Assembly: GCA_029953675.1 (NCBI GenBank)
Contig: JAMWBK010000001.1
Coordinates: 2,294,001 to 2,358,000, forward strand
Direction: 5' to 3'
DNA from: Rhodosorus marinus CCMP1338
Lineage: Eukaryota; Plantae; Rhodophyta
Length of the DNA stretch: 64,000 bases
Shown here: piece after piece, positions 1,990 through 63,478 of the stretch
How the letters are laid out: the number at the start of each line of letters is the position of its first letter
Position numbering within the stretch: the stretch's first letter is position 1
Notes under the pieces: generated by a model
The model's database searches: none
The model's input: only the letters and a program-made list of their open reading frames with translations
Told to the model about the DNA's origin: nothing
Position numbers and translations under genes: made by a program

Positions 1990-3179
1990 TCAGACAAGTA
2001 ACTGGACGGAGCAGTCAATCACGCGCTCAGGTCAAGCCGCCAAAGTCTATTGTGTTGCAAGGAACAGCTTACCTTTATCGAAAATGCGGTAATCGCCAGC
2101 ATTAGAATGATCTGTACTCCGGAAACTCCCATGTAAGAGTGCTCCGCTACGTCACTGGAATCTACAATACCGAGCGTGACCAAACAAGCACTCGATGAGG
2201 ATGACTCGAGTCCAGGAGGAAAACGACATAGGTGTTGGAAAGGAAGAACAAACCTTGGTTGGAGGTCGACGCTTCGATGTTACGCTTGAGCTCGTTAATT
2301 TGCAGTGAACGTTCGTTAATTTCTTTCTCAATCTCGTTAGCCATCCGTCGTCTTCTCTTCAGAAGCTCCTCTCCTGAATAAGTAGTTGACTTCACGCTTG
2401 CGCTCGTTCTTAAGAAGCCAATGCGCGGAGTTCGAAGCTGTCCAGTTAGTTCTTCCAAGCTTTCCTAGACATTCCCAGAGCAAAGCAACTCGGGCGGAAC
2501 TGGAGTCTCGCGAACTAAGGGGAGCACGCTTACTCTGACGGGGTTATAACAGTTCTGCCTTTATCCACATTCGCTTCTGACTCCATTTTATCGGCGATCT
2601 CCTTCCATTGAGAGTCCTCCCCAATCACCATTTTCACCGGGAAAAGCTGAAAACGTGTAGTTTTCGGTGGAACTTCTTGCCATAGCTATGATACACCAAG
2701 CAGAGACATGAGAGATTCAGAAAAACGCTACAAATGACACAGATCGGTGTTTCCTCTCACGCACCTCGGCAATATCAGCTGACTCGGTTCTGGGCATTGG
2801 GGCAGTCTGAGCAGAGATCAACGGGTAGTATCAAACAGAGGCAAAAGCACAAGCGCTCAGAAATGCAACATCCACGCCTTTCTTTCTCAGAAACATTTGG
2901 GGGTTGCATCACCTCTAAGCGAAACTTGTCCCTGCAGGAGAAGACATCGGGAGGAATCTGCGAATACGCGGTCATCCGAATCACGACCGCAATCTTCTGG
3001 TCCGGAGGGACGACTCCCGCAGGCGGATTCACAGAATATCTTTCCATCTTCGATAACTTCAGCTTGAACAGCACCGGGAGCTCCGACGTAGACTCCAGCT
3101 CAAGCGTACAACTCGCAGGCACGTCCGGAGTGATCGTGAAGACCATCTCCTTTGCGCTTGGCTTTATCAGCGCCTCCAT
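1990..3179 (-). CDS. VAP/MSP-domain protein (VAMP-associated protein-like), multi-exon
   Basis: Exon 1 has the MSP pattern (LELESTSELPVLFKLK...RYSVNPPAGVV...DKFRLEV). A coiled-coil exon follows (RRMANEIEKEINERSLQINELKRN, 2162-2458 frame). A hydrophobic frame at ~2075-2140 (GVSGVQIILMLAITAFSIK) plus LLV* at 1990 resembles a tail anchor. The splice path into that tail is unresolved. Confidence 0.72.
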
Positions 3180-6100
3180 TTAAAAAAAGACAGTAAACCC
3201 CCAAACGATAGGAAAATTTGATGCCCTAAGAAGCAGAATTCAAAGATGGCAGAAAGAAGAAAATTTCTCTCTTGTAATGCCAAACAGAGCCAGTCCCTCC
3301 GCACACCGGCCTAAGTCTCAATCGGGTCCTGATTCATAGCGATCCTACCACAATCAAACCGACACAAAAAATCACGGACGCGTGTTAGGTTTTCAATGGA
3401 ATAATTTCAAGATACAACGCGTGCCATGTTTTAATTGGTATTTTTACTCAAGACACGTGTACATTGAAAATTGGTTATTACCAACGAGAAGGACGCGTGG
3501 CGTATTTATGTGGTCAAAGGGGAATGGGACGGGATGGCGAACATGGACGCGCGCCGGTAAGAGGACACACCTCCGCGTTGCACACAGAGTTGGCGACCAG
3601 GCTGACGCTCTTGTACAGGACTGCGGGATGGACATTTGAGCAGGTCTAGTTTCGTGGTGTTTGTTTCGTGCTGATATGAGGCCACTTGGATCGTTTGTGC
3701 TTCCCGGAATGTGACATCGTTCAGTAGTCGCGGATTGCGCCGTGCGCCGAACACGGGCTAACAAGAAGACACGTATTCGGCGTAGCCCACGCTAGTCGTC
3801 GGGTAGTACTAATAGACGCAACAGAAGTCGAGTCTCCCGCTCCCTGAAACTCCTTTGCTCGGTTTTGCATGCTCGACGAGAGTTCCCGGCCACAAAAAAC
3901 AGTGCACAACGTAATGCCCTGGACAGGCGGGAAGACTATTCAACTGCGAAAACCACACGAAGGCTATCCGGACAAAGCTCGAGGATAGGTACGTTGAGAC
4001 TACTTCATGTAATGCATCTGCGCCTTCGGCCAGTTACTTGCCTCAGCTTGCAGGAAACCTCATCGATTGCAGTATTGGGCGAAACCGGGGATGAAGTTGC
4101 AGCTTAACAATCAAAAGGCTCTGTCCGACCGCTTCAATTCAGCCTATTGTTTGCAAGCTCACATATTTCCCTTCAGCCTCGTCCTGAACCATGTTCTACG
4201 CCTATACATGAACCTGGACTAGTTCCAAGGCGGTCATACTGCTTCCTTGACATCCATCAGCCAGATACGGGCAGCGCCCTGCCCGTTTGGCCTGACACCA
4301 TCATCCCAATCACCCAAACCAAGCCAGTTGCTCCTAACCGACAACGGGAAAGTGAGCTTTCCTTCCCCCAGTCGGTTTTGCTTACAAAAACAAGAGAAAA
4401 AAGAGTGCAGCTAACTAATCCAAACCGAGACTACTCACTTCAGGGTTAGTTCTCCACCCATCTGATGGTGGGGAAAAATTAGTGCAAAACCGTTTTGGGG
4501 TACTATGGTAAGGTTTTAAGAGAAAAACAATTTTGTCGGCCCTCGAGCAGACGAAATATTTTCAGAATTCAAGGGACCGACATCTTTGCTGCTCGGAATA
4601 GGTTTGAAATTAAGCATGCCTTTCCAAAACGGATATGTTGCAGTGTATTTTCTACTATTTTTCATTAATTAGGGCATATCCAGGTGAGGTCGGATTGGGC
4701 GATGAAAAAGTGGAAAATCTGAATCGCTTGATGCTACGCGTCGGTTTGTTCAAAAAGTGGAGGGGGGTAAATCACTTTACACATACTCCACTTTTTCTAA
4801 TAACACTCGTCAAAAATCCCATATTCAAAAAATTACCACCGCTTTAATCCACCTCCCTTACTCGAGCTCATTAGGAACCACCTGCACCATTGAACTTCTC
4901 AATACGTATTAATATCTCCCTTTCTTATTTTTATTAACAATAAAGAACAAATTCACCAGCCAAGTCCATTTCTGCACCCCCCCTCCTTCTCATCAAACCC
5001 GGAAGGGCGCTAGTGGATCGTCAGGCACCTTTTTTCAGATTACTACGATATTTATTTTTCAAATATATTTAGGGGCTCCCATTTCGGCAAATACGACCAG
5101 ACGAAGATTTCGTTTCTCAAGGATAGTCTTCAAAATAACAAAAAAACCTTTTTAGATAAATATTATTATGGAATATCGAGGTGTTGTTTTTTTTTGAAGC
5201 CGGTTAGTATATCATTTCATAATTGAAAAAAGCTTCCTCGCGCTCCAAACCGGCAGAAAAAAACCAGGAATTGTTTTTGTTTTCGAATCAAGAGTAAGGC
5301 ACACTACGTAAAGGGGAGTTAGCGGATACCGAGTAAGTTTCTCTCCACAGGACATAAATATTGTATTTCAAAAACGTTTAGAACTATTGTTGATATGATT
5401 GGACAACAAAGTGAAAAAAAAACCAACACCCATGTCCAAAGGAGTTTTTTGAAAGATTTTTCAGAAGCGAATTCATCCGATGACGAAATTTAGACCTGAT
5501 CATACCATTCCGAACCTAGTTTTCTGCTCTTTTTTTAGTATAAATTTTGTTTGAGGTTCTTCCACATTCAGCAGCCAGAGCGCGTTCTCTTTCTTGATAC
5601 ACAACTACCTTTAGGCTGTGATAAGTTTACTGATTATGACTCCCGCCATTCAACGGCCAGAGGCTTTCTCTTTCTTGATGTGGGACTTTCCCCCTTCCCC
5701 TCCCCCCCCACCAGCTCAACAGTTGGCGTAGAGCAAGCAGGCAACCTCATCATTTTCCAAAAAAAAATTATAGTTGGAACATCCCTAAATCTACGAAGTC
5801 CAATAGATATTTGTTAAAAGGGGTGAGGAGGGAGCAAAAAGTTATTCAGCGTCTTACCGGTTAATTGAATTAATTATAAAATATCATATGTATTGAGGGG
5901 AATGGGAAACGAGTAAAAGGGAAGGGGGGGGGGGCAAGGGAGCAGGGAAAGAAATATTTTACTTTAGTGCCTAGTTTATCAGTAAGCTGGAGTTTCCCGT
6001 CATGATGTATGATTAGTTTTTTTGCTGAAGGCGGTGGGCAGCTCCTCAATCTAAGAGTTAAGTTGGGAAATGTGGGGGTCGGAGAGCGAGCGGGGGGAGG

Positions 6101-6261
6101 GGCTGGGAAAGGGGTTGGGCTAAGAGAAGGTGTTTGTACAAAGTTTTGGCTTTTGTGGAAGGGATGTACGAGGATCGATCTCTTAGGGCTAGTTTTTTTT
6201 TGGAGGAGAATTTGACCAGGAGATGTTGAGTTAGAGAACGAAATTATTTTTTTGCTTCAAG

Positions 6262-8654
6262 ATGAGCGGTCTAGTGCGGTGGATTGGTTTGGGGTTGGTT
6301 TTGGTATGTTTTGTAGGGGTTTGGGGCCAGACAGAGACTATCATATCTGTCTCTGATGAAATCCCCCCGCCGAGTAGTGTACTCGAGAATGACATGCTTT
6401 GGGGAATCACTGTTAACCTCGACAAGTTCAACTCGTCTACGCTGGTTATAACGGCGGTTGGCCCAGACCTCGAGCAGCCGACCGACATGGCTACTTATGT
6501 GTACAGAGTGAATTCACAGGGTCAGGCATCTCAGAGTTTTTCTCTGTTTGGATACGGCAATTGCGCCGATGTCTCGTAAGCTTCCCTCCCGCCACCAAAA
6601 CAAAAGCCGATCACAATCGACCTGCCTTGGGGTATCTGCATCTATATGAACTTGTGTGTGCTACGTAAGAGTTCCCGCTGCTTAGAGTACTAATCATTTC
6701 GTTTTTGATGTTGTAAATTTTAGAAACAACGTGATCTACACATCCTCGACGGACGGGAGCGTGATGGTTATAGAGCTGAACAGTTCTGGAAACTGGGAAC
6801 CTACGCAGGAGGTTGTATTCTTCACGCCGGATCAACTTGATGATCTTGATAACTTTGGACGAATTTGTGCTGCCGGACCCGACGCCGCGCTGTTTACATT
6901 CTTCGATGTCATGGACAGCAGCGGTCCAATTCCAACGTTTGATACCTTTGACATGTATGTTGTGCGAAACGGAGACTCATACGAGTGCCTTGGTGGGCAG
7001 GGCGACTGTACGAAGAACACATTGGCCTCAGGACTGGATACCTTCCAGTACTTCCAGTTCGATCAGAATGGCGACCTTGGGTTGCTCAGTGTTGATTCTA
7101 TGGATATTGAGTTTGGAACGCCGGTATTCGACGTGTCGGCTGGAACCATCACCTTCAACGCAATCGGCATCCCCAGGGATGCCGACCCGTTGCCTCAGGC
7201 TATGGCCCTAGATAATGGAGCTCTGGCCTTCAACTACGCCTTTCTCCCGGAAATCAGTGATCCAAACGACGTGCGTGAGAGAGCATCGGATCCTCGGACC
7301 AGTTTTCTTCAGCTCAACATTGGGTTCTTTGGCGAGCTCCTAGGGTTTGTGACTGGACCTACGGGTTTCCAGAGGGAGAGGCAGGTGACTGTGAACAAGT
7401 TTGAGAACAGTAGTCCCAACGAAGTTACAGATTTCTTCAGCCTTGTTGACGACAGTGCAGCTGGAAACCTTATAAATATCGCCGTTCAAGATACGACTAT
7501 GAGTAGTGGCGAAGTGTTTGCGTTGAGCAACTTCACGTTCGACACTACTGCAAGCGGTACGACCGTGGTCAAGGTATGGCTTTTGCCCTTGGGAGCCAGT
7601 CCGACCCCCGTTCCGAGCAATACGCCGACTACCACTCCGACGCAGAGCCCATCTACGAGTGCCTCTGTGACCCCGACCGCGACTATGTCAGAATCTGCGA
7701 CCCCGACCGCGACTATGTCAGAATCTGCGACCCCGTCTCCGAGCCCAGATGTGAGTACATCTGTGAGTGCATCTGTGAGTGCATCTGTGAGTGCATCTGT
7801 GAGCGAGTCTGTGAGTGAGTCTGTGAGTGAGTCTGTGAGTGAGTCTGTGAGTGAGTCTGTGAGTGCGTCTGTGAGTGAGTCTGTGAGTGAGTCTGTAAGT
7901 GCGACTGCAAGTGCGTCTTCCAGTGCTACACCGAGTGAATCTGCGACTCCTTCGGCGACTCCGACTACCACTCCTACTCCTTCTCCCACGGCGGCGCCAG
8001 TTTGCTTCTCAGTTCATTCTTCTACCATGCAATGGACTCCGTCCGGACTGAAATCTGTCACTCTGGGTGACCTGCGACCTGGCAATCTCGTACAAGCCTT
8101 TGACGCCAATGGAAAATTAGCCCTGACGGAGGTCGTGCTAGTGCAGCACCATGATAGCTGGGATACTACTCAACTGCTCAGAATAGCTTACAGGACTGAG
8201 GCTGGGGAGGAGAAATCACTGCATGTGTCCGAAAACCATTACCTCGTGAAGGGGCTGCAGCCGCGAGTATATCAACTGGCGCGCGACTTCAAGGTACTCG
8301 TCGCGTCCTCCTATTGGTTTCGAACTAGCCCGCTTTGCACTCGTCTAACCGCTTTTCGTCCATCACAATTCGCAGGTTGGTGATGAACTGCTCATCGCGG
8401 GGGTGAAGGGTCACAGCGCCGCGAAGATCATCAGCAGAACTGTGGTTGAAGAGCCTGTACGGAATGTACTTACTACGAGCGACATGATTATCGTAGACGG
8501 AGTGTTAGCGTCGTCCTACACGAACGTTCTCGGCATCAGTCCGATGCTGCAGGCTATGCTGACATTGCCGCTGAAGGCTTTGAACGCCCTGGGTCTGGGC
8601 AAACTGGCCCAGAACCTCGATGCATTCGCCAACAAGCTTGTGTTAAAGTCTTAA
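6262..8654 (+). CDS. Secreted Hog/Hint-domain protein A (~720 aa): signal peptide, propeller-like domain, Ser/Thr/Pro stalk, Hedgehog-type Hint domain, amphipathic tail
   Basis: Exons 6262-6575, 6724-8293 and 8376-8654 join in frame through GT..AG introns (branch ctaac at ~8345). Hydrophobic N-terminus. Hint starts PV|CFS (Cys codon 8003-8005) and includes LRPGNLV, VSENH and IVDGVLASSY, matching Hedgehog Hint blocks. Confidence 0.88.
7667..7897 (+). repeat. Coding tandem repeats in the stalk of Hint protein A
   Basis: 30-nt unit (ATPTATMSES) x2, then 12 copies of a 12-nt unit encoding S-[T/A/E]-S-V at 7754-7897. Confidence 0.95.
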
Positions 8655-10230
8655 CTTCAGAGAAGAGAAACATTGCTTTCCTCCTTATATCCATGAAGAT
8701 TTAGGTCTTGCAATGCGATTCCTTCTCGACCGGTAGCGGCTGGCGTTTACTCAGCGCGACGTTGCAATCGCATCTGGAACAGAGGCTGAGACTGATTCTC
8801 GTTATTATGTACCGGATTTTGTTGAGCCGCCTTTTCTCCTGTCCTTGCCTGTGCCTGGAGCATTGTGCTAAACTTAAAATGCATTGAGCTACCGAGAGCA
8901 AACTTGAACCCCCGCCCCCACAACCCAGCCGTGAAATCAAGGAAACCACTGGAGACAGAGGGATGAGGAATTCGGTGCCGATGTTAGGAGGACTAGAACC
9001 ACCTCCAGGAGCTCCGACCCCTTCGACTGATGATCAGTCATCAGATCTCGACCGGGAGTCTGACCGAATTCTTCATCTACTCTGGGCCAAACACCAGTTT
9101 TGTTCCACTGCTGCTTGACTAGTTTTCTTCTGTTGAGCGAGTGGATTATGCTAGCCATTGTAACTCCCTCTCCTCGTGCCTAAAAGTTTGCATGAGCCAA
9201 AATGTTGCAGGGTGAGTACTTTTCGAGAATCGAAAGGCATGGCAGCTCCAGCGAGCTTCGGCAAACGCACGTTGGTGAAACCGTCTGCGTCGGCCAAATT
9301 GTGGGGGTTGAGTACTGCTCGGATCGAACCGTTTACTAGTTGGTTTGAAAGACTAGCAGAAGTCAGGATACGGACGCTGCGTTCGGATGCTGCTGGCGAA
9401 GTTTGCGGCCCTGATTCCCAACTTCAACGGAAATGGGATGGGTACGGGACAAAGCCGCGCATTCCCGGGAGACAGACGGAACAGCGGAGCAATGATTCGC
9501 TTGATGATGAACGAATTGTTCAATATTGGAGTACCAGTATCACGGGTTCAGTCAAGCTACGTTGGGCGGATGCTCTGGCAATTGATTGAACTGTCCCTGT
9601 GAATGGACGATTTCGGCACCGAAAACAGGGTTCGTGTCTCGATTGGTGACCTTTTCTGCAGCTAAACGTATACTAGGCACCCACGTGGATACTTTTTTTT
9701 CGAGTGCTATCTCGGAGTAGATTGGAACGCCTGAATCAGACTTGCTCTGCGACCCTCGGTTTCTCTCAATCCTTTTCCAAATTCCTTCTGTGGGGAACGC
9801 TTCTGGATTAATGTCAGCATCCTGCACAGGAACCATCATCTCGCTGCTTTTCTCATCTTCAATGTCAGAAGTTCCGTTTCTGGTCTTAGCTAGAAATGGG
9901 CGAATGTTAACATGTCGAGTTCAATTCCAATGCTACAAGGTGAGGGAGTACTTTTCCTGCCAAACAGTTTGAATCGGCCAATGTTACATGTCGAGTTCCT
10001 CTCGAGGGCAAAGGTTTGGGTTTTCAGAGACCATTTGTTCTTGTGGGATCAGTGGGTTTCCGGGGTTTCAATCCAAAGCGACGAGAGAGAGTTACTGAGC
10101 TCTTGTCGCAGATTTTACTTTATAAACGGACAAAGTATTAGTCGGCGATGAAGAAACACACACCAAAAACGGAAACAAAAAAATTTAGGTTCGCCCGAAA
10201 CATGCAGAGCCACAACTAGCAAAATTCTAT

Positions 10231-10259
10231 CGTGACGGCCTCCACGTGAGGCCGTCACG
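10231..10259. repeat. Perfect 12-bp inverted repeat (hairpin) with 5-nt loop
   Basis: cgtgacggcctc-cacgt-gaggccgtcacg, about 225 nt downstream of the stop codon of Hint protein B. Confidence 0.9.
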
Positions 10260-10272
10260 GATTCCAATGGCG

Positions 10273-10355
10273 TTCAGAAAGAGGTACCACTCCTACTTCT
10301 GCTCACGCACTCTCATAGCTTTCAGAAAAGGTACCACCACACCTACTTCTGCTCA
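10273..10355. repeat. Imperfect ~33-35-nt direct repeat, 2 copies
   Basis: ttcagaaagaggtaccactcctacttctgctca (10273-10305) and ttcagaaaaggtaccaccacacctacttctgctca (10321-10355). Confidence 0.85.
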
Positions 10356-10483
10356 GTTGCGACGGCTCAGGGAGGAAACCAGGGTCCACTTGCACAGAAG
10401 TTCTTGGAAGGCTCGTACATTCGCCGCACGAAGAACAAGCTTACGGAAATGGAGGAGATAGCTTAGCTGCGCTCATGCTTGAA

Positions 10484-13037
10484 TCAGTTGCGTCCGAGGA
10501 GAGTTCCAAATATAAACGAATGAACGGCCTTGTCGAAATAGTTGGCAACGCCGTTCAGCCCCAGCAGGTGCAAAACCTTGAGCGGAGCCAGGAGCGCTGC
10601 CTGTATTCTGGTCGGGATATTCAGCACTGCGGTGAAGCTGGAGGCGAGGACACCGTCCACAACGACCATATTGTTCATCGTCAGTACGTTTCGAACTGGT
10701 CCGTTGGTCTTGTGAATGCTGGTAATTCTTGCTCTAGATGGCTTCCGCCCATCGTCTCCGACAATGAGAAGCTCGCCGCCAACCTGGTATGGATTGCCCA
10801 AAAGGTGGAAAGGCTCACAGCGTGAGTACGTAAATACTGAAACAACTGATGCACTGGGTCACAGAGTTCATAGTGGAGGTTGCCTACCTTGAGAGATTGA
10901 GCCTTCACGAAGCGGCGAGGATTCAACTCCTCGAGGATAAGATGGTTTCCTGTCAATTTCAAAGTACCAGTCTTTGCATTCGCCCCCTCATAAGAGACTT
11001 CAAGAAGCTCAGTAGCCGCTTCGCAATTTGCGTGCTGGACGAGCACAGCTTCCGTAAACACCAGCTCTCCGGTTGCGTTGAAAGCCTCTACCAAATCTCC
11101 TGAGCGCACCTCCCTAAGTGCAATCTTTTCGACTTCGTTTCCTCTCATCACCGTCACCTCGGACTCCGCTGAGAAACACACCGGTTCCGCGGTCGGGGTA
11201 GGAGTCGGGGTAGGTGAAACACTAGGTGAAGCTGTTGCGGTTTCGGAAGGACTTGTTGAAGTAGTCTCTGAAGCCGTCGGAGTCGGAGGTGAGTCCGTAG
11301 GTGTCGGGGTCGGGGGTTCGTCAGTAGGCGTCGGAGTCGGAGGTGCGTCGGTCGGGGTCGGAGTCGGAGGTGCGTCGGTCGCGGTCGGAGTCGGAGGTGC
11401 GTCGGTAGGCGTCGGGGTCGGAGGTGCGTCGGTAGGCGTCGGAGTCGGAGGTGCGTCTGTAGGCGTCGGAGTCGCAGGTCCGCCAGTGGGCGTCGGAGTC
11501 GCAGGTCCGCCAGTGGGCGTCGGAGTCGCAGGTCCGCCAGTGGGCGTCGGAGTTGCGGGTCCGCCAGTAGGCGTCGGAGTGGCAGGTCCGTCGGTAGGCG
11601 TCGGAGTGGCAGGTCCGTCGGTAGGCGTCGGAGTGGCAGGTCCGTCGGTAGGCGTCGGAGTGGCAGGTCCGTCGGTAGGCGTCGGAGTAGCAGGTCCGTC
11701 TGTAGGCGTCGGAGTGGCAGGTCCAGAAGTAGGGGTCGGTGTAGCAGGTCCAGACGTTGGCGTAGAAGACGGTGTTGGCGTTGGTATCGGCGTTGGCGTT
11801 TCCAGGAGATAAACGTAGACCGTTTGTCCATCTCCCTTGTTCACAGCACCAGTTGAGGGACTTCCAATGGCGATAACATTCGCTGCGGCCATGTCCGCAT
11901 CACGAATTGTATCGCTGAAGCCGGCCGTACCCATATCGTTCGTTGCGATCAAGTATTCATTCACGAAACGCCCGCTAGTCTCGTTGAAGGCCACAACTCT
12001 GATGTCCAGGGGAGAATCCACATTTGATAGTACGTCTCCTTGTACGTAGAATACCCACTCTGGGGGAACAGCCGACACTCGAATGAAATTCGTCTCGTTT
12101 CTCTGAAACCGTGGGCCCGTTGTGCTATTCGTGTAGTCTACTAGATATTGTCGATTGTAAGCAAGGGTTTTGTTGGCAATATCGCCAGCACTGATGGCTT
12201 CTCCACCTCCTCCCGTACCCACAGTGTCGAAGATGGGAGTCGCAATTTGTCCGGTCTGACTAATGGAGTAGACAATGATCTGCTGCGGATTTGTCTCGGA
12301 GATAACTTGAAGCAATGATCCATCGGTATCAAACTTGAAGCGCTGGTCTAGGTCGAAGCGCCCGGAGAGGTCGGTTGGCTGACAGGACCCCTCGCCGCCG
12401 CGGCAGGTCCAGTTGCCATCAGTGCCCCTGAAGAGGAAGTATTCCACCGTATCTAATGTAGAGCTGTCGAAGGACGTCAGCATGAAAACATCGGGCCCAA
12501 GAGCACAGTTGAATCCGAATCGGCCGGCTGGGAGGACGTCTCCAGTGTCAAACGTCTGCTCTAACGTAGCTCCATCTGATTGAACTGAATAGAACCTAAC
12601 CTCGCTTCCTGTTCCAGTTGTGGCCATGGTTCCGTCGCTGGTACAAGAGCAAAGCAAATCGCTGGTTAATGACCGGCAGATAAAGGCGCACAGCCCTGGT
12701 TTTGTGACTGCAGAGTAACAACTTACTAGACGTCCACGCAGGCTCCCCATCCAGAAAGGTTGAGAATATTCGTAGGCTGACTTTGACCAGTAGGGTCCAG
12801 CTTGTAAATGTAAGTGAACACCGCAAAATCTCCTGACGGGTTGGATGGGATAGCGTTCGTCACCAGCACACTCTCATCAAATCGATCGAGCCTGACGACT
12901 CTCCCGAAAAGCAGATCCTCTCCAGCCGCATTTGCGGGAATATCAATTTCCGAATACGGCACCCTCCTCTCCACCGCAGTGACCCCTAAAAGCATGCCCA
13001 GTAGGATACATCCTACACCAATATTCCAGTACCTCAT
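10484..13037 (-). CDS. Secreted Hog/Hint-domain protein B (~786 aa), paralog of protein A
   Basis: Exons 13037-12727, 12637-10888 and 10783-10484. Both introns sit at the same protein positions and phases as in gene A (after CxDV, phase 2; and K|VG, phase 0). Hint starts PV|CFS (Cys codon 11178-11176) and includes VRSGDLV, LTGNH and VVDGVLASSF. Confidence 0.88.
11276..11755 (-). repeat. Coding 27-nt minisatellite forming the Pro/Thr stalk of Hint protein B
   Basis: About 18 copies of a 9-aa PTPT-x-x-P-[A/P]-T unit in blocks: SG x2, DG x5, GG x4, DA x5, DE, DS. Confidence 0.95.
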
Positions 13038-15872
13038 GATTCGTCCCTAAGAAACGGGATCAGTGCCCAGAACAAACACCTCCCGGCCCGCCCCCGAGTC
13101 TAAAAAAAACAACCGCAAACACGGAACACAAATTCTAACCAGTGGATCCTCAAGAAAATATTTCAACGTTGTTTACAAAACAAAACTCACTCCTTAAAAA
13201 TCCATCCACTTCTCCTCCTCCTCCTCCTCCTCCTCCTCCCCCTCCCATACTCATCCAGAATTGCACTTATCCTCTTTCCAAGTCTTTCAACACCACAAGA
13301 AGAAGAGGACACCGGCATAGCGTTTCACGTTGGACAACCCCATCCCCAAAACGGGTTTACATAACCCTGAAACAAAAGATAGCTCTTAAAATAAAAAGAA
13401 ATACACAAATCAAATAGTCTGGAGGGAGAGAGTCTACTGTCGAAGGAGTAAAAGAGTAGTAGTCCTACGTCAACTGGGTGGGGGCCGAAAACAACTCCCT
13501 CAGAGACGCCTCCTCAAAAACTACAAAATAACTTGAAAACTAATTAGCTCCATTTTCCTAGCTTGTCTTATTATTTATTAGTACGACATAAATATTCAAT
13601 ATTATTCCTTTTTTTTCCTTTTTGTGTTTATTATCTGAAGATATAGAATTGTAATAGTATCTTATTTTATTTAGTTTGATGCAAATCCAACTTCCCGTTT
13701 GAGATCACACTTTCTCATTGAGTGGCGGCTGTGATACCGAGGGGGTTATATCAGGGATAGCAGCCAAAAAAAGGGGGGAGGGGGGGGGGGAGAGGGGTTG
13801 CGTAGCATCTGGTTCCAGGAGAAATTATAATCCTTATTTAGTATTGCTGATTTTTCAAAACTATCGTTGGGCTCAAGGTTTATATATCGCAATCTCAGCC
13901 AAAAGTTAGATACTTCCGTTTCGATGAATCCTTGGTTAATTTTAATTAATTCAACATTGTGCTTTAAGAGGACTTGTACTATTCCAAACCCGTCCTGAAG
14001 CCAGTTCCCGATAATTTTTCTATTGAATAGAGATTTTCGATGGTTTAATTGTAGATATTAAATTTGCTAGTACAATCGATGTGGAAGTTTTTGAATTCAT
14101 TTTGTTTTGTTTTATAGCTGTTTTATGCGGTTGACGTACGACGTTTTCCAAATACAAAATGAGCTGAAGTTAGGTGGTTTTTTGTAAAAACCAGAATTTC
14201 TCCAGTCCTCCTGCCCCCAGCAGTTCCGTCTTTTTCCATTAAAAAACTTGAGCCGATTTCTCGTTCTTGATCGTAAAAAGGACCAATAGGGAAACAAATT
14301 GCCTGAAAAAGAAGGTATTGGCTCTGCCCATACATAGCAAAGGGCTATATGAACGTTATAAAAAAATCATAGTCAATACCGTAATATATTTGTTTTTTGT
14401 CAATTATCCCACACCCTAGGAGTATTGATAAAAATAAAAATAAATATGATAAACTTGGGGTAGTACAGTCTCCTATTTTGAACACAGAATTGGCTCTTCG
14501 CTCAGAATTTTGGCCATGTTTCTGGATCTATTTAGGTTGACGAGAGGGGGGGAAACAAAGCACATGAAAGCAAACAACAGTTCATGAAAAATTAAAGAAT
14601 CCGTCGCAACCAATCCTTAAGGAGGACCAATCCATTTTCGCCAATGAGAACAGGAAATGAATTCTCACCAATGCGAAAGAAAGAGTATTCTGTTAAATAA
14701 AAACAATTGATCATTATTTTATTTCTAATCAGGGATAACCAAATTCAAGCCACAGAAAAAAAATTACTTGTTTTTTGCAGGGGAGGAGAGTGGGGGGGAA
14801 GGGTCTTCCAAAGGCCGAATCTACTTAGAAGTAGATAGAGCTCGGGTAAATGACATTGGACGAATTTGTGGTTATTTTTGTAAGCTCTTTCGTCGGGACA
14901 GATTGTCCCCTAGCGAACTACGACTTTTTTTTGGAGGGAGGGGAGATCGGTGGAGCTGACAGTAGCGAAGTTGGAAAGCCGGCCGGTCTTGCTTAACAAG
15001 ACCGGCTTACCTTCTCCGCGTGACTTGTATCTTTTTGGAGCACACGCAGCTGTGAAGCCCGCAGCATGTGAAGTTTCAACGGATTCTTTAGGCCAAAACA
15101 GCGGGAGATTGGAGGCGTGACGCTCCATCACGATATTGTTTTTATTTCGTCCTTGGCTTGTGAGAAACTTTTGACGTGGAAAGTAATGGAGGGCACCTCA
15201 TCCGCTCCCTCAGACCATGACGACCAAGACGTTGAATTCGGTTTATTCCTAGAGTGGCTAGGAATTGAACTTCGACTTCCAATTTCAAGGAAGTCGAAAT
15301 TTGCATCCAGGCATCAAGCCTCAAGCATTTGTTGCAAATACCTAAAAGATAAAGATCTTTTAGGTGAAAAAAGTTTCATGAAATAGGATCATCCCCTGCA
15401 ATCCGTTTCATTCAGCAGAGAATGGGAATACGAACCCTTCCAGGGCAATAGTGTCATTTACTATTATGCCTCTTGTAGTAGTTCTACTGGAGTTGACAGT
15501 CCAAGTTCATGTGAAACACGTAAGTGAACTTGGACTCCAAGCCGTACCACGCAATATGGTACTCCCCTCTAGGGGCACACCTTGCGACTCGCACGAGTGG
15601 GGTATTATCCCACTCGTGCCGGTCGCAAGAAATACGCCAATGACGTCTGCAGCGGAGACAGCGATGATAGGTGGGAGCGGGTTACGTTAGTCTGGGGTTT
15701 GAAGCAACAAAAACTCGCACTTTGTTTCATCATCAGTAGACAAACAGGTATTTCATATGTACAGACTAAAACTTGGGTTGCTAAAGTAAAGCAACCGAAA
15801 CAGCAAAATAACAAAACGAGATCCAAGCAGCATCTAGAACGATTGCTTGGTCGCCATCAAACCAGCCGATCC

Positions 15873-18800
15873 TCAGCTATACTCGGCCCTGTAGGTCTGC
15901 TGCAGAACCCCTTGGTCCCGAACTTTGACAGTGAAAGTGTTCTTCAGCGACGGGTTATGTTCCCACTTCACAAAGGTCTTGCCTTTTTGAACTCGCGGAG
16001 CGGAAACAGTAATAAGCGCTCCAACAACAGCATCAATTTCCACCGGCCCTGGGCCTGTCCTTGAGTCAGCAGTTACGGTGAAACCATCCTGGTTCGAAGT
16101 TACAGCAACCTTCCGAAGTTTGGGCTCTATCGACTTCGACACGGTGTGACAAAACTTCCCGGCGGCATCAGTGCAAGCTGTCAGTTTCACTTCGAATGAA
16201 AACGTCTGACCATGGTCTGGAACGGTAAAATTGTTTCGAAGCCTATTGCACCCCTGCGTGAACATGTGCGTATGGCAGTTGGGGTCGCAGTGATGCAGAG
16301 GAACTTCAAAGCAATGCTTTTGGATCTGCATTCGCTGCCCCTTGTGATTCAAGCACTTCCCGGAGTATGTGATTTTCTGTCCAATGACAAACTCCTTCGG
16401 CAGGTCATCTAGCGAACATCTAGGATTTAGCGCACTAGCCTCACAGTCTACAACGGCGTCACCCCAGACTCCCAAATCATGCTTTACCCCTTGCCTTCCG
16501 GGCAAGACGTTCAGAAGCAGGTTAGTCGCCCCGAGCATTGGGCACTGCAGTAAAGCAGGTCCATCACCGCCTGTCATGATCTGGGTTGGGCATGTCGAGG
16601 TAGCCCCAACCGCACCCTTTGCAACAAACATCATCTCTCCGTAGTTTTGGCTCAGATAGCTAACTCCAACCTTCGAAATAAACTTGGAGCAACGGCCAGG
16701 AAGTTCAAATCGTATGGAAGATTGCGCGTGCTGAGTAACTCCGGATTTGTAGTTCACCAAGCTGCCCGGCGGGGGTTGCGTACGAAGCGTGATGAGCCCG
16801 CCGTTCCAGGCTTTGTTCGCATAGTATCCAGGTCCCCTTCCAGTTCTCGGCACCATTGCACCCAAGTACCTGATTTCCCCATTACAGTTCAGCCTTGCCC
16901 CGCCAAGCGCAACGTACTCGAAATCAAACGGATTTCCTCCATTTATCGACGCTCGAATACCCAACACGCTTTTCCCACCAATCGACACGAAGACGTTCTG
17001 CGCAAGAGTAGAGCCATTCAGGACCATTGTCTTCACAACATTAGAATCCAGCAGAAACTCCAACTTAGCGTTTCCATCGAGAGCGTCCACCCTCCCTTCG
17101 ATTCCAACCTGAGCCCACATTGACCCGCAGCCTTGTACGGCGTACTCGACCAGTTTGGGTGCCTTCAGCTGAATACCTCGGAAATACGTCTTCCTGACCC
17201 CGCTCATGCCCTGCTTCAAAACTCTTAGGCGGCTTTGGTTCCCAAGAGTATAGTCCGTTCTCCCATTGCTACCCAGAATCTTCAACTGCTCTACTTTAAC
17301 CATTAGTCCGCTCGGCGGTGGTAGTACAGTTGTGAACGAAGCAGTCCTTCCGTTCTGAATGCGCTGCCCGTCGGCGCCTCTCACAGCTTCGCCAACAACA
17401 ATCGAGTACCGTGAGTTGTACTCCAATTTCCCTGCTCCCAAAATCACGCGCGTAGAACCTTCCGCAAAGCGTGCTTGGAAGGCCACAGTGTTTCCACCAC
17501 TGTCTCTAAACTTGATACCCACCAAAACGCTTGTTGGATCTATCGGCTGCGAAAATTTTATCTCGGGATCCCTTTGCACGTTCACGTTTGTCTGCCCGAC
17601 GGAAGGTATGAAGCTTACCACACGCGGAGCAGCCTTTATTGACGCCCCGCAGCGAAATATCATGTCGCCCCAGGAAACACGGTTGCGGTTAACCCTTTGA
17701 TTAAGCCCGGTTATCTCCGCAGTGAGTGTGACCGTGGCCCCGGGTTGGACATCGAGGTTGAAGCTCAGCCCATCCGAAACTCTCGTCAGAACTCCGCTCG
17801 TTAAGAGAACTCTCCGAATCCCGTTAAATCGCTGAAGGACTTGTACTATGGACCGTCCGTCATCGAGCTTGGTCACCGCGTCGTCGATACCAACTGTTCC
17901 AGACAGCTTTTTGCAACTGTCTGGTACTTTCACGGACACGCTAGCGCTTGGATTCATGCCGACACCTTTCTCAAACGTCTCCCCTCTAATAGCAATTTTG
18001 GTTCCGTCCTTCAGGCCTGATTTCCCGTTGGATAAATCTTTTTCCATGGGACCCACACCATTCTTCACATTCAACCATTCTAGATCCGAGAAATATGTCG
18101 CGAACCCAGCACCAGTCTTGAACGAACTTCGAAAGTTCTTGGTCATGGTCCGACCCTGCTCATCCCTCAATCCTGTCAGCGTGATTGTATATTGGGTATT
18201 TTTCTGAAGAGGCTTCGAAGGTACGAACGTAGCAATATCTTCGCTCTTGTCAAAGGAAGTCTTGCCCTCAACCAAGTTCCCATTGTCGTTTCCTCCTTGC
18301 CTCATAATAAAGCCGTTTTTCAACGATCCGAACAGTACGTTCTTCGAAAGGGTAATCTTAATTGATGTTGTATACTCGACACCCTGAGCACCATCTGGAG
18401 GATTGATAAACTCCACCTCCGGAGGGTTGGTGTTCGGTTTGTAAAGAATCTTTCGAATCTCCCGAGCTGCCAAGGATATGTAATGAATCTCTTTCGACGG
18501 CGATGATTTCATCGATACAGGACCCCCAAGGTCCGAGGCGAACTTTTGCACATTGGTTAGTTGCAGCCTCTCGTTAATCTTCGCCCTTCTCATCCAGCCG
18601 AAGACGTAGTCGGTGTAGTAAATCCAGTCTTGGTCAGCCTCCGGCCAGTCGGAATTCGCTGATGAAATACGGAGCAGAGCGCTCGCAGCCTGTTTCCGCG
18701 GGTAAACAAGAAGTCGGATGAATTCAATTAGGCGTGGAAAAAAAGCAATGACACGGCGCCGCCTGGAAGTCTTCCATAGCAGGCAAGAAGATTCCTGAAG

Positions 18801-19846
18801 CTTTTTTGAGTACGACTTCTTGGGGGTCAACTTACCGCCCCTTCCGCGTGGTTCCAGAAAACAACCGGGTCGAACCTCCTTCCAGGACCATTACCGGAGT
18901 TGAATGCCCTGCACTCGGGAAAGTTGGAAAATCCGCCATTCTTCGTTCTAGCCTCCCAGCAGGGCCAACCCATATTAGAGCCAGCTCTCACTGGGTTCAT
19001 TTCCTCCCATGTGGACCAGCCTACCTCTGCCACTAGCGGCATCTTCAGAACATCATCGTAAACAACTCGCCACGGATTTCGGCAACCCAGACCCCAAACC
19101 TTGGCTCGATTAGCTGCAGCTCCGACTCCCTGCTTCATGAATGGATTCCCTTGTACTCCTCTACCATTTATGTCCACCCTCAAAAGCTTCCCATTCAAAC
19201 TGTCTATCTGCTGAGCCCGAATTGCCAAGTTGTCAGCACCATTGCCACCTCCGTCTCCAGTTGTAACGAGCAGGTGCTTCTGTGGATCCCAGTTGAGGCC
19301 CCCATTAGCATGAGTGAAACTCTCTGTACACATAACATCCCTTGTGATGGGAATCTTTTCGCATCCTGATCCTGTTACCGATCCAAGAATGACTGTCATG
19401 GAATTCTTCAAAGCCAGAGTTCCCATCGCGTTGGTCTTGAAACGTGAGACTTGCGCCGTCTTTGGACCTTCTCGATCATTTTTGTTGTTCTCAAACGTGT
19501 AGAGGAAGAAGACAAGTTTGTTGGTGCTCCAATCGGGGTGCACAGCACATGCAGACATTCCCCTGTCGTGATGATCATTAACCATGTTCCTCAGATCGAG
19601 GAAAGGGATGGCCTTCACTATGCAATTCTCAACGAGGAAAACGAATCCATCCTTCTGGGTTACGATGAACCGATCCTTGCCATTCGCCGGCGGCAAAAAG
19701 CACAGATCTGTAGGGAAGCCCGGAATCTTCCCACAACTCTTAAGCTCATACTGGTCCGGAAAATCGGGAAACCCGGAAACAATCAGCAGCATACAGGCTA
19801 CCACTAGACCTGCCACCAGGCCCATCCCCCTCACTAACTTTGCCAT
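15873..19846 (-). CDS. Secreted glucose/sorbosone dehydrogenase-family (PQQ-type beta-propeller) protein with Big_5 Ig-like and NPCBM/NEW2 modules (~1275 aa)
   Basis: Exons 19846-18836 and 18689-15873, joined by one phase-0 intron (gtaagt...ctaat...cag). Signal peptide present. GSDH motifs DRGMSACAVHPD, HANGGL, VTTGDGG, NGKLLRVD, WGLGCRNPWR, EVGWSTWEEMN, NMGWP. Two Big_5-like repeats (PEVEFINPPDGAQGV..; PRVVSFIPSVGQTNV..). One clear NPCBM (YFSDLEWLNVKNGVGPMEKDLSNG...GETFEKGVGM) and two degenerate ones. C-terminal LHHC..CHTH..FTVPDH module. Confidence 0.9.
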
Positions 19847-55918: not shown

Positions 55919-56671
55919 TTAGAAAGCTTTCTGGGGCTCTCCGTAGATAAAGTCATCACAGACGACAACGTCGGCGCTCGACTTGTAGGATTTGTTGATC
56001 GGTCTGTTACCCAAAGTCACAATCACGCGAGCGATGATCGCCTCCCTGAAGTAGAAGCCGAGGAATGACAGGCCTCCAGGGGTTGGCTCAACGTAATCCT
56101 CCGCGATAAGGCAGTCGTCGATATCGTACAGTTGCATCTTGGTCGTATTCTTCTTGTTCACATCCACAAACACAATTCCGAATCCCTTCGTGACAGCCTT
56201 GGCCCTCTTAGCAGGGATGGTAAGGCGGATCTGGAAGACATTTTCCTTGATCGGTGTGAACAGTCTCTTCGGGCTGAAGGTCTTGAAGTTCTGGGATGCC
56301 TTCTTGTTGACTGTCGAGAATCGCTTGTCGCCATTTGACGGAGTAGGATCACTGACCAAGAACCTGTTCGAATCACTGGACACGGTCAAGCCACGCGTGA
56401 CGGTGTCGGAGAAGAACTTCCTCGGAAACGTGAACGGCACGATTGGCGCATCCCAGTTGATCGATCGCTGTCCCTTGCTCTTCGGTCCCGGGTCGCTACC
56501 ATTGTCCTTTCCTCCCAGCAACTCCCTGAAGAAATCGACAGCGTACTCCAACTTGGCAGCCTTCGAACCGCTCCCATGAACGATCGTCTTGAAGCTCGTC
56601 TGTGACTCGCAAGTCGCAGCCTGCGCCGCTGCGATCAAAGCAACAGCCAACACGATTGACAAAATCTTCAT
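55919..56671 (-). CDS. Secreted uncharacterised protein (INWD...DDFxYxEP family), paralog 1, 250 aa, intronless
   Basis: Uninterrupted ORF with signal peptide MKILSIVLAVALIAAAQA; collinear similarity to 62648-63478. Confidence 0.9.
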   Translation of the reverse strand: MKILSIVLAVALIAAAQAATCESQTSFKTIVHGSGSKAAKLEYAVDFFRELLGGKDNGSDPGPKSKGQRSINWDAPIVPFTFPRKFFSDTVTRGLTVSSDSNRFLVSDPTPSNGDKRFSTVNKKASQNFKTFSPKRLFTPIKENVFQIRLTIPAKRAKAVTKGFGIVFVDVNKKNTTKMQLYDIDDCLIAEDYVEPTPGGLSFLGFYFREAIIARVIVTLGNRPINKSYKSSADVVVCDDFIYGEPQKAF

Positions 56672-61215: not shown

Positions 61216-62647
61216 TGACGAGAGTCCAACAATATTGCAGCATTCGAACGCCAGAGAGTTAGAGAGAGCTCCGTGAGGAGGCTGTCAAGGCTCCCAGGGG
61301 CATGGCGAAAACACAGCTAAACCCCAGACTACTCCAGTGGTCGCATTGAACCAGCGAAGCACCACGACGTTGTGCAGACGTGGGAAGATATCGCGCAGCC
61401 CGGGGACAAGAAATAGAAAAGTCAAGATACTCACTCCTGCAAGCAGCCAGATCAGTGACCACCAATACCACCGAATCACACGAAGGAAAACAGGTGTCGC
61501 ATCATTTGCATCAAGCGCACGAGATACAGGCAAAGGGACCTCGTAGTCCAGCTCGCGATCCGTACCTGGCGCCTGCGGCCGTAGATATCGAAATAAATAC
61601 CGGTTTATACGCGTATGGCGATGAGCACGGGGTCTTGCAACGCCAGACAGGACGTGGAGGCAGCGTGATGTTTAGTAACCTCCCGGCGAGACCAACTTAT
61701 AAATACAAAACAAATTAGACAAATTTCATTCGTAAATACAACATGAAAACTTCGCTTTCATTTATTCCGACCTAAATGTTGACGAATCAACCTAAATTAT
61801 CGTACCCTCCCAAAAAGAATTGATTGATAACTGCCAAATGTTGAGTGTTTCCAAAATTCGTGAGCTAGTTTTCAATTGATTTACAGACGAAAATTCATGA
61901 ATTATAAAAACTTTACAACAGGATCGAGTATTTGTTTCCTGATTTTTTAATTATTTTTGGAAATATTTGTTCAGGTATAGTAAAAGTTGTTTTTAAAATT
62001 AAATTCTCCTGGTTTTTATTATGTTATGAGAAGGTCTAGTATGTTTTGAGTTTATTTTTGATCGTAGGGGCTCCCGTTCTGATTGAACTTAGTGCAGCCC
62101 AAACCACTTGGCTGTTGATGGCATTTTTCTTGCGTCAGTGGACTTCTGCTGTGAAGGCTCTCTACTGTCTGATTCTCAGCATCTGAAGACAAGTATTGTA
62201 CTCCTTGACTGGAGGATGCATACGAATGGCGAACAACCAGCAAAACATCACAGCAATACCAAAGTTGGAATCTTTCCTTCGCAGAACAGTCCCGATGCGG
62301 GTTTGGCGGGGGGAGCCCAACTTCCATGAGCATACATTGAACAGCTCTAGCGGAGGCCGCTTTATGATTGCGTTAAGGGTGGGCAATATTTTCAGCGCAA
62401 TTGTGGTGATTAAAAAAAGAAACAAATCAGAACTTAGTCTCCGAAGTCAGTCCAGTCTACTCGCTTTCGGGCGGAGCCCAATCTGACGAGCCGTTTAGCA
62501 GTTGTCATGGACACTGCGGCATGCAGATCCCAACGACCACTGACTACCTGACTGCCCAAAAGGGTATTTAAAGTGGCTTAGTGGAAATGTGTGCGGTTCG
62601 GGTCGGGAAGGAAACGACAGCTTTAGGTATTGGTACAGCTGGGAAAG

Positions 62648-63478
62648 ATGAGGGTTTGTGGAATTGTTTCAGCGGCAATTGTCGCAGTGATTATTGCAAG
62701 TGTTACTGCAGATCACCACGGCAACTGCACGTTTTTGGATGATGTTCACTTCAAGTCGATCACCCATGGCCGTGGGAAGAGTGCTGGGGATTTAATCTAC
62801 TCGCTGGAGTTCTTTAGGAGTCTCCTTGGATCTCCAAACAACGGGAGTAGGAAGGGTCCAAAGTCAAAGGGCCACCGGTGGATCAACTGGGACGCTGAAG
62901 AGGTGCCGTTCAAGCTTCCGTACGACTACTTTAACTCCATCAGCCGACGGGGCCTAATTCTTGAGAGCAGGAAGAACAAGTTCCGAGTCAGCAGCCCCCC
63001 AGCGGTGCCTGGTGGAACAAAGGACAAGAGGTTCTCATCGATCAACCAGAAGGAATCAAAGAACTTCAAGACCTTCACGCGGAAGAGACTGTTCACTCCT
63101 GTCAAGGATAATGAGTTTGAGATAAAATTCAACATCCCCGGACGGAGCCAGCGCGCCGTTGTGCAGGGCTTTGGAGCCGTTTTCGTTGGTGTCGACGTAC
63201 CCGGGGTCACAAGGATGGTCGCGTACGACCGAGGGGGATGTATCTTGGCCGATAAATACGTTGAAACGTACCCGAATGGACTCTCCTTCCTCGGTTTTTA
63301 CTTTGACTCACCGATCATATGGAGCGTGAAGATTAGACTTGGAAACAAGGCAATTGATAAGTCCAAGTGCGGCCTCTCGTGCGGTGAAGACGTTGTAGTG
63401 ATGGACGACTTTCTATACGCCGAACCTATGGACCGCAGATATGGAGTACCAGGAGTTCGGGACAGGGACAGCGTGTAG
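62648..63478 (+). CDS. Secreted uncharacterised protein (INWD...DDFxYxEP family), paralog 2, ~276 aa, intronless
   Basis: Signal peptide MRVCGIVSAAIVAVIIASVTA. Shares FK(T/S)IxHG, FFRxLLG, GPKSKG.R.INWD, RG, DKRFS.(I/V)N.K.S.NFKTF..KRLFTP.K.N, GFG.VFV.V, GLSFLGFYF and DVVV.DDF.Y.EP with 55919-56671. Confidence 0.9.
   Translation: MRVCGIVSAAIVAVIIASVTADHHGNCTFLDDVHFKSITHGRGKSAGDLIYSLEFFRSLLGSPNNGSRKGPKSKGHRWINWDAEEVPFKLPYDYFNSISRRGLILESRKNKFRVSSPPAVPGGTKDKRFSSINQKESKNFKTFTRKRLFTPVKDNEFEIKFNIPGRSQRAVVQGFGAVFVGVDVPGVTRMVAYDRGGCILADKYVETYPNGLSFLGFYFDSPIIWSVKIRLGNKAIDKSKCGLSCGEDVVVMDDFLYAEPMDRRYGVPGVRDRDSV

Follow-up and report, generated by a model that had tools for sequence, protein, structure and literature searches.

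Two convergent Hog genes in a red algal nuclear genome

The DNA analysed here (64,000 nucleotides (nt), hereafter the window) covers positions 2,294,001 to 2,358,000 of contig JAMWBK010000001.1 in the nuclear genome assembly of the red alga Rhodosorus marinus CCMP1338 (GCA_029953675.1; PMC10250338), and harbours two genes, A and B, that converge tail to tail and encode proteins ending in a Hog domain, that is, a Hint module with an adduct-recognition tail behind it. Both genes sit ~2.30 Mb into the 3.81-Mb contig and are thus not subtelomeric. We read window positions 5800-13500, listed the open reading frames (ORFs) and spliced the models at canonical GT..AG sites, by which two long, interrupted reading frames facing each other in the ORF list were joined into two intact proteins. 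Gene A (+ strand) comprises three exons (6262-6575, 6724-8293 and 8376-8654) that encode 720 amino acids (aa) and are separated by GT..AG introns of 148 nt (6576-6723) and 82 nt (8294-8375), while gene B (- strand) comprises three exons (13037-12727, 12637-10888 and 10783-10484) that encode 786 aa, with introns of 89 nt (12726-12638) and 104 nt (10887-10784). The introns occupy matching alignment columns in the two proteins, intron 1 in phase 2 after ..DV(S/Y) and intron 2 in phase 0 after ..K|VG. A and B are 42% identical over the C-terminal 220 aa that include the Hog (E 2e-43) and 28% identical over the N-terminal 480 aa including the head domain (E 1e-27), and they are clear convergent paralogues. 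An earlier note on this DNA had described a convergent paralogous pair with identical intron positions at 6262-13037; both points hold, and the two ends of that interval are exactly the two ATGs.

The model of gene B is identical to the public 786-aa protein KAJ8908859.1 / NDN08_005563 of Rhodosorus marinus, which was returned by our exhaustive HMMER search and goes by the names "hypothetical protein" (KAJ8908859.1) and "Hint domain-containing protein" (UniProt A0AAV8V3H0). An alternative acceptor for its intron 1 at 12661, which would add 8 aa, was rejected because the public model and a gap-free alignment to L002, a contig carrying a third member of the head family (see below), favour 12637. 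For gene A the public annotation (6394-8654, 676 aa) differs from ours at the 5' end: its span and length are accounted for by the same two introns if translation begins at Met45, and an additional 132-nt intron, the other way to account for the span, was rejected as good splice sites are absent. We kept the start at 6262 because it is the first ATG past an in-frame stop (10 codons upstream), because it yields a canonical signal peptide that a Met45 start would remove, and because the orthologous ORF P0003, identical to A at 88 of 105 positions overall, retains 35 of the first 44 residues. The public model, apparently starting at Met45 (6394), drops this conserved signal peptide and has no recorded Pfam match, so that gene A looks non-secreted and Hint-less in databases.

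Transcript support comes from L001, a 1339-nt polyadenylated transcript in a JGI sample of a related strain, whose protein is 87% identical to B and which shows that the B orthologue is expressed as polyadenylated mRNA. The complementary DNA (cDNA) aligns to window positions 11533-10882 and 10785-10083 with 82% and 76% identity, and reads in a single frame through PT repeats into ..EEPI|CFSADSE.., ..KVGGELF.. and finally ..LGRN*; intron 2 of gene B is exactly absent from it, which confirms the exon 2/3 junction. Nucleotides 642-1329 of L001 align to 10785-10083 and are followed by the poly(A) tail, from which a 3' untranslated region (UTR) of gene B at 10083..10483 (- strand) and its poly(A) site can be deduced. 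Within this 3' UTR lies an imperfect direct repeat of ~40 nt (TTCAGAAA..GGTACCAC..CTACTTCTGCTCA, within 10268-10352), and a (CTC)11 microsatellite occupies 13212-13245, ~180 nt 5' of the start codon of gene B.

Hog domains with intact catalytic residues

The Hint module of A comprises aa 532-677 (8003..8522, + strand) and that of B aa 591-738 (10631..11178, - strand), each spanning intron 2 and each beginning at Cys-Phe. HMMER runs on the spliced proteins placed both above the gathering cut-off of the Pfam Hint family PF01079 (29.7 bits), with 34.2 bits for A and 54.5 bits for B. In a phmmer search against the PDB only Drosophila Hedgehog was matched, in an alignment that opens with Cys1 and reaches into helix 1 of the sterol-recognition region (SRR; LAPLKVL versus LAPMRLL). 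An AlphaFold2 model of the B Hog built from a 41-sequence alignment reached a predicted local distance difference test (pLDDT) score of 89.6 and a predicted template-modelling (TM) score of 0.85, and predicts an all-beta Hint fold (model residues 9-156) followed by two helices (163-178 and 182-200). In Foldseek, inteins and bacterial intein-like (BIL) domains ranked behind two Hedgehog structures that match this model best: 6tyy, the D46H variant of the Hedgehog C-terminal domain (Hh-C; E 9e-11, TMt 0.83), and 1at0 (TMt 0.86). The module of A is supported by its Pfam match and by alignments.

The key residues are Cys532-Phe533, His580 (at the position of Hedgehog Asp46), Ser607-E-N-His610 and Ser675 (at the position of Hedgehog Cys143) in A, and Cys591-Phe592, His639, Thr666-G-N-His669 and Ser736 in B. 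We counted conservation over an alignment of 41 mostly non-animal Hogs and found Cys1 and Phe2 in 35/35 each, the His of TxxH in 41/41 with Thr (31) or Ser (10) as first residue, and His at the Asp46 position in 39/41. The Cys143 position is held by Thr in 25, Ser in 7, Cys in 5, Ala in 3 and Glu in 1, and Val is the commonest residue at -1 (11/35). A and B match the consensus at every key position tallied. The Hint module is followed by a tail of 43-48 aa with motif K, at aa 678-720 in A (..LTLPLK..; 8523..8651, + strand) and aa 739-786 in B (..LLAPLK..; 10487..10630, - strand), which was recognised by alignment between the two proteins and with the tails of red algal Hogs; in B, helices are predicted at aa 745-760 and 764-782. 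The Pro and the basic residue of motif K are each present in 38/41 Hogs. Comparison of B with its orthologue gave ratios of nonsynonymous to synonymous substitution (dN/dS) of 0.31 for the Hog, 0.34 for the Hint module and 0.24 for the tail, indicating purifying selection under which the tail is at least as constrained as the Hint module. A and B are thus almost certainly members of the Hog family.

Secreted proproteins with an orphan head on a repetitive stalk

Upstream of the Hog both proteins share a layout of signal peptide, head and stalk. Hydrophobic N-terminal segments with plausible cleavage sites were recognised by inspection in A, B and L002: in A the signal peptide would comprise aa 1-22 (..VWG|QTE; 6262..6327, + strand), with a 19-residue Kyte-Doolittle window of 2.0 and small residues at -1/-3, and in B aa 1-21 (..VTA|VER; 12975..13037, - strand). 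The evidence supports A and B being secreted Hog proproteins (Hint plus adduct-recognition tail) whose cleavage site immediately precedes the Cys of CF.

The head domain (~365 aa) spans aa 23-392 in A (6328..7585, + strand) and aa 22-383 in B (11800..12974, - strand), is interrupted by intron 1 in both genes, and carries four and six N-glycosylation sequons, respectively. Four cysteines (101, 153, 193 and 200 in A; 100, 148, 182 and 189 in B) are conserved in A, B and the third member. The head found no match among 5.8 billion proteins when these were searched by indexed words, none in Pfam at E<=10 and nothing better than E 0.75 (a WD40 blade) in a profile search of the PDB, and BLAST against the upstream regions of other Hogs and two scans of metagenome contigs, one with the head profile and one with the Hog profile, revealed no relatives either. 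Exhaustive HMMER profile searching of 1.84 billion representative proteins returned only three head matches, all from its own lineage: B itself, the exon-1 ORF of the A orthologue and the exon-1 ORF of the third member (P0004).

The AlphaFold2 model of the head is poor (pLDDT 43), with only residues 11-110 reaching 55-81 and drawn as four-stranded sheets. Foldseek searches with this poor model nonetheless retrieved beta-propeller proteins for nearly all top matches, at TM scores of only 0.2-0.28, which we take as just a hint, and hhalign between segments detected no internal repeats (<=2% probability). The most that can be said of the fold is that it is all-beta and possibly a propeller, the latter being only weakly suggested.

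The stalk of A (aa 393-531; 7586..8002, + strand) is 139 aa long, consists of 32% Ser, 17% Thr and 14% Pro with SVSE/SVSA repeats, is encoded by tandem repeats of 12 nt (11.8 copies) and 30 nt (2.4 copies), and ends in ..PSPTAAPV. That of B (aa 384-590; 11179..11799, - strand) is 207 aa long, consists of 35% Pro and 33% Thr in ~18 copies of the 9-aa unit PATPTPT(D/G)G, is encoded by a 27-nt repeat (17.7 copies at 11275-11751), and ends in ..PTPTAEPV; a B-type stalk repeat is transcribed in frame in the orthologue cDNA (L001). Each unit of the 12-nt repeat of gene A (TCTGTGAGTGAG, 7760-7901) holds a perfect donor-like GTGAGT hexamer, which can mislead gene predictors and perhaps the spliceosome too.

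Much of this architecture had been described in the earlier note, which listed signal peptides, an N-terminal domain not recognised from described Hog families, long Ser/Thr/Pro stalks and a Hedgehog-type Hint domain starting at CF, and proposed anchoring other than by glycosylphosphatidylinositol (GPI) or a transmembrane helix; all of these survived the follow-up, including a search of the N-terminal domain on its own. Two of its elements stood only in part: the tail, described as ~40 aa and amphipathic, has about that length but is only moderately amphipathic (see below), and the head, described as a propeller, draws propeller-rich if weak Foldseek matches but lacks a profile match, repeats and a confident model, and is the least secure part of the description.

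A candidate sterol-transfer reaction and its alternatives

By analogy with animal Hedgehog, both proteins would cleave themselves in the endoplasmic reticulum (ER), move head and stalk onto a sterol and have them displayed at the cell surface, a reading to which we assign a probability of roughly 0.6; everything in it beyond Hog membership we infer. The signal peptide would confer entry into the ER, where the head would fold with two disulfides and N-glycans and the Ser/Thr/Pro stalk would probably be O-glycosylated, as the sequences suggest. Homology with Hh-C predicts an N-to-S acyl shift at Val531-Cys532 (A) or Val590-Cys591 (B), aided by (S/T)xxH, and resolution of the resulting thioester by the hydroxyl of a lipid held in the helix-loop-helix tail, with the acceptor hydroxyl activated by His580 (A) or His639 (B) at the animal Asp46 position. 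The likeliest acceptor would be a membrane sterol, so that head and stalk, ending in ..AAPV or ..AEPV, would emerge as a sterol ester in the outer leaflet of the cell surface, and the free Hog fragment would be discarded. Active self-cleavage we regard as probable, and we give a sterol as the adduct slightly less than an even chance.

We favour a sterol as acceptor because the tail can be aligned to the helix with which Hedgehog recognises sterol, because its conserved Pro and basic residue correspond to the HPR motif by which human SHH binds membranes (PMC7906309), because red seaweeds are reported to have cholesterol as their major sterol (PMC5104453) and because neither a transmembrane nor a GPI-type alternative anchor is present. 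Outside the signal peptide no 19-residue window exceeds 1.6 on the Kyte-Doolittle scale (the tail of B peaks at 1.54-1.58, and that of A never rises above 1.5), and no GPI-like C-terminus was found; anchoring by a transmembrane helix or a hydrophobic C-terminal GPI signal was therefore rejected. Intein-type splicing was likewise rejected: motif J reads VVDGVLASS(F/Y)T and the proteins end 43-48 aa past the Hint module with no C-extein, no terminal Asn plus downstream nucleophile and no endonuclease, which rules out splicing and leaves N-terminal cleavage as the sole option. Buerglin (2008; PMC2362128) postulated a secreted ancestor of Hogs that attaches a sterol or a similar moiety, and D46H Hedgehog is active and processed in cells (PMC12054796, Fig. 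1C).

Several observations weigh against sterol transfer as in Hedgehog. The Cys143 of animal Hedgehog, which forms a branched thioester and whose replacement in C143A and C143D inactivates the protein in cells (PMC12054796), is Ser in A (S675) and B (S736), a substitution that the earlier note overlooked; the chemistry therefore cannot be assumed to be identical to that of animal Hedgehog. Conceivably, by analogy with the Ser/Thr +1 of inteins, Ser or Thr at this position could give an oxy-ester intermediate, or the step could be skipped. The predicted cleavage site reads Pro-Val|Cys-Phe, with Val in place of Gly-1 of Hedgehog; the tail is short, lacks the animal motif L (HWY) and has Gln for the His of the animal HPR motif; and the amphipathicity of its two predicted helices is moderate, clearly above shuffles in only 1/4 helices across the two proteins. 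In addition, the report on cholesterol concerns seaweeds and not Rhodosorus itself, and no autocleavage or adduct for any red algal Hog was found in the literature searched.

Alternatively, the proteins might cleave themselves with no lipid involved: water or a small nucleophile would resolve the thioester, and the soluble, heavily glycosylated head and stalk would pass into coat, mucilage or medium. The Ser in place of Cys143 and the short tail lacking motif L could be read this way, as could the Hedgehog-related Hog proteins of C. elegans, which PMC10793445 describes as structural parts of apical extracellular matrices. Yet the tail is conserved in A, B and other Hogs down to the Pro and basic residue of motif K, is predicted to form an SRR-like helix hairpin and is under purifying selection (dN/dS 0.24), which weakens this possibility as a tail serving hydrolysis only would not be expected to persist, and we consider it unlikely. 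The absence of Cys143 and the replacement of Gly-1 by Val might also betray a dead Hint domain in proteins that stay full length and use Hog and tail as a C-terminal membrane-associating or interaction module, and the Pfam score of A is barely above the cut-off. But although A and B are only 42% identical, these two proteins and the orthologue all keep Cys1-Phe2, (S/T)xxH and the His general base. Non-animal Hogs normally have Ser/Thr at 143 and Val at -1; neither is therefore a sign of decay, and we judge an inactive domain very improbable.

A transfer reaction might also end on something other than a sterol, either another hydroxyl lipid or a wall or matrix polysaccharide, the latter fixing the head to the wall and not to the membrane. 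In the 6TYY study the His general base reportedly widens the acceptor tolerance of the D46H enzyme, which counts in favour of this option. It was the lack of a known acceptor that earned the tail of non-animal and nematode Hogs the name 'adduct recognition region' (PMC2362128). On the other hand, no precedent for a glycan acceptor was found in the literature searched, the tail can be aligned to the helix for sterol recognition in Drosophila Hedgehog and a reaction in the ER would come before any contact with wall polymers, so that a non-sterol acceptor seems to us distinctly unlikely, and the description of the proteins as polymer-anchored, put forward earlier, found no supporting evidence. 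The same is true of the word adhesin, and an adhesion or lectin role for the head is in our view doubtful.

Sterol transfer and surface display could be carried further: the algal surface would present head and stalk that their own Hog has linked by an ester bond to cholesterol or a related sterol, as the first protein sterylation demonstrated outside animals. The reaction, performed with a His general base and Ser for Cys143, would reveal what the ancestral 'Ur-Hog' did, and the orphan head would be a novel extracellular fold for binding, confined to stylonematophycean red algae. This extended version we regard as rather unlikely to hold in full.

Relation to known Hog and Hint proteins

A catalogue of 2008 lists Hogs whose secreted N-termini are specific to their lineage from red algae, mosses, alveolates, cryptophytes, haptophytes and other groups (PMC2362128), in agreement with a statement on red algae in the earlier note; in red algae and mosses Ser, Thr or Asp takes the place of the Cys of motif J (PMC2362128). 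What A and B share with other red algal Hogs is a secreted N-terminus before the Hog, a His where Hedgehog has D46, Ser/Thr where it has C143, motif K (LLAPLR/K) in a short tail and, as often in that phylum, an acidic or Pro/Ser-rich linker with Val before CF. Genomes of Cyanidiophyceae encode 2-17 Hog genes each, including Kelch+Hog proteins (PMC13353863), which are a precedent for the all-beta, possibly propeller-like head; yet the head of A and B is unrelated by sequence to the upstream regions of red algal Hogs and holds no recognisable Kelch. Unlike the red algal Hog sequences compared, A and B carry a long tandem-repeat stalk, and their Hogs are only 21-29% identical to florideophyte Hogs, with PVRNVLT where the latter have GLYNPQT. 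The best published match is Hog1 of the cryptophyte Guillardia theta (57 bits, sharing VRxxLT), with florideophyte Hogs at ~42 bits; this likeness might reflect a red algal (endosymbiont) origin of cryptophyte Hogs or simply deep red algal diversity.

A head on a stalk released by Hog processing is also how Hoglet of the choanoflagellate Monosiga ovata is built (Snell et al. 2006), with signal peptide, head, a Thr-rich spacer of ~200 residues and Hog (PMC2362128). The head of Hoglet resembles cellulose-binding domains, whereas that of A and B is an orphan, and the lineages are unrelated; repeat slippage probably gave rise to the two kinds of stalk on separate occasions. Nematode Hedgehog-related proteins (warthog, groundhog, quahog and Xhog) likewise join lineage-specific secreted N-domains, some with Thr-rich stretches, to a Hog (PMC2362128), but they keep two nematode-specific Cys in the Hog and their N-domains are unrelated to those of A and B. 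The head-on-a-stalk design put forward earlier is thus already known from Hoglet, some nematode Hogs (PMC2362128) and the Kelch+Hog proteins (PMC13353863).

With animal Hh-C (1AT0, 6TYY) A and B share the Hint fold (TM 0.83-0.86), Cys1-Phe2, TxxH and a helix-loop-helix after the Hint module (PMC7906309), at ~24% identity and with the exchanges Asp46 to His, Cys143 to Ser and Gly-1 to Val. They lack the Hedge signalling domain (Hint being their only Pfam match) and a Gly-Cys-Phe site, and their tail measures ~45 aa as opposed to ~70-100 aa, motif L being absent. Inteins and BIL domains share the Hint fold with the B Hog (Foldseek ranks 3-50, TM 0.6-0.8), from which A and B differ by ending shortly after it, with none of the splicing elements listed above.

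A and B add two well-preserved members with an orphan head to an established family; they are not a new kind of anchoring system. The cargo adduct of Hogs outside animals has been open since the 2008 catalogue, and recent work on red algae still calls these proteins "of unknown function" (PMC13353863). Their catalytic residues are intact, their tail is compact and their cleavage site is defined, which makes A and B clean and complete candidates for finding the adduct of a non-animal Hog; expression of an orthologue and cholesterol as the reported main sterol of the host phylum add to their value, and they naturally carry His at 46 and Ser at 143, the focus of current mechanistic work on human Hedgehog. 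At the same time, B is already public as a Hint-domain protein and many other red algal Hogs could serve equally.

Origin of the pair and neighbouring genes

The third member of the head family is encoded by L002 (Logan SRR22824290, 1-2015; also L003), where intron 1 is placed as in A and B. L002 covers the whole head domain, and an SA/SP-rich stalk begins before the contig ends. Its head is 36% identical to that of B and 25% identical to that of A, so that the duplication giving A and B predates the split from the L002 organism. The pair, which had been called a system, is an old inverted duplication and not a two-component system. No third copy of A/B lies within the 64-kb window; a weak tblastn match of the B head at 44955-44827 is spurious, with a stop codon inside.

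The upstream neighbour of gene B (15873-19825, - strand) is annotated as a 1268-aa protein with an N-terminal hydrophobic segment, a glucose/sorbosone dehydrogenase (GSDH) propeller, Big_5 immunoglobulin (Ig)-like domains and NPCBM domains. Big_5 is a bacterial Ig-like domain in Pfam, and this domain mix looks bacterial for a red alga. According to public gene calls, an MSP (Motile_Sperm, PF00635) gene lies at ~1990-3179 (- strand), ~3 kb upstream of the start of gene A and on the opposite strand. Finally, two intron-less paralogues at 55919-56671 (- strand) and 62630-63478 (+ strand), which are 48% identical (E 1e-81), have signal-peptide-like N-termini and match no Pfam family, form a second orphan secreted pair within the window.

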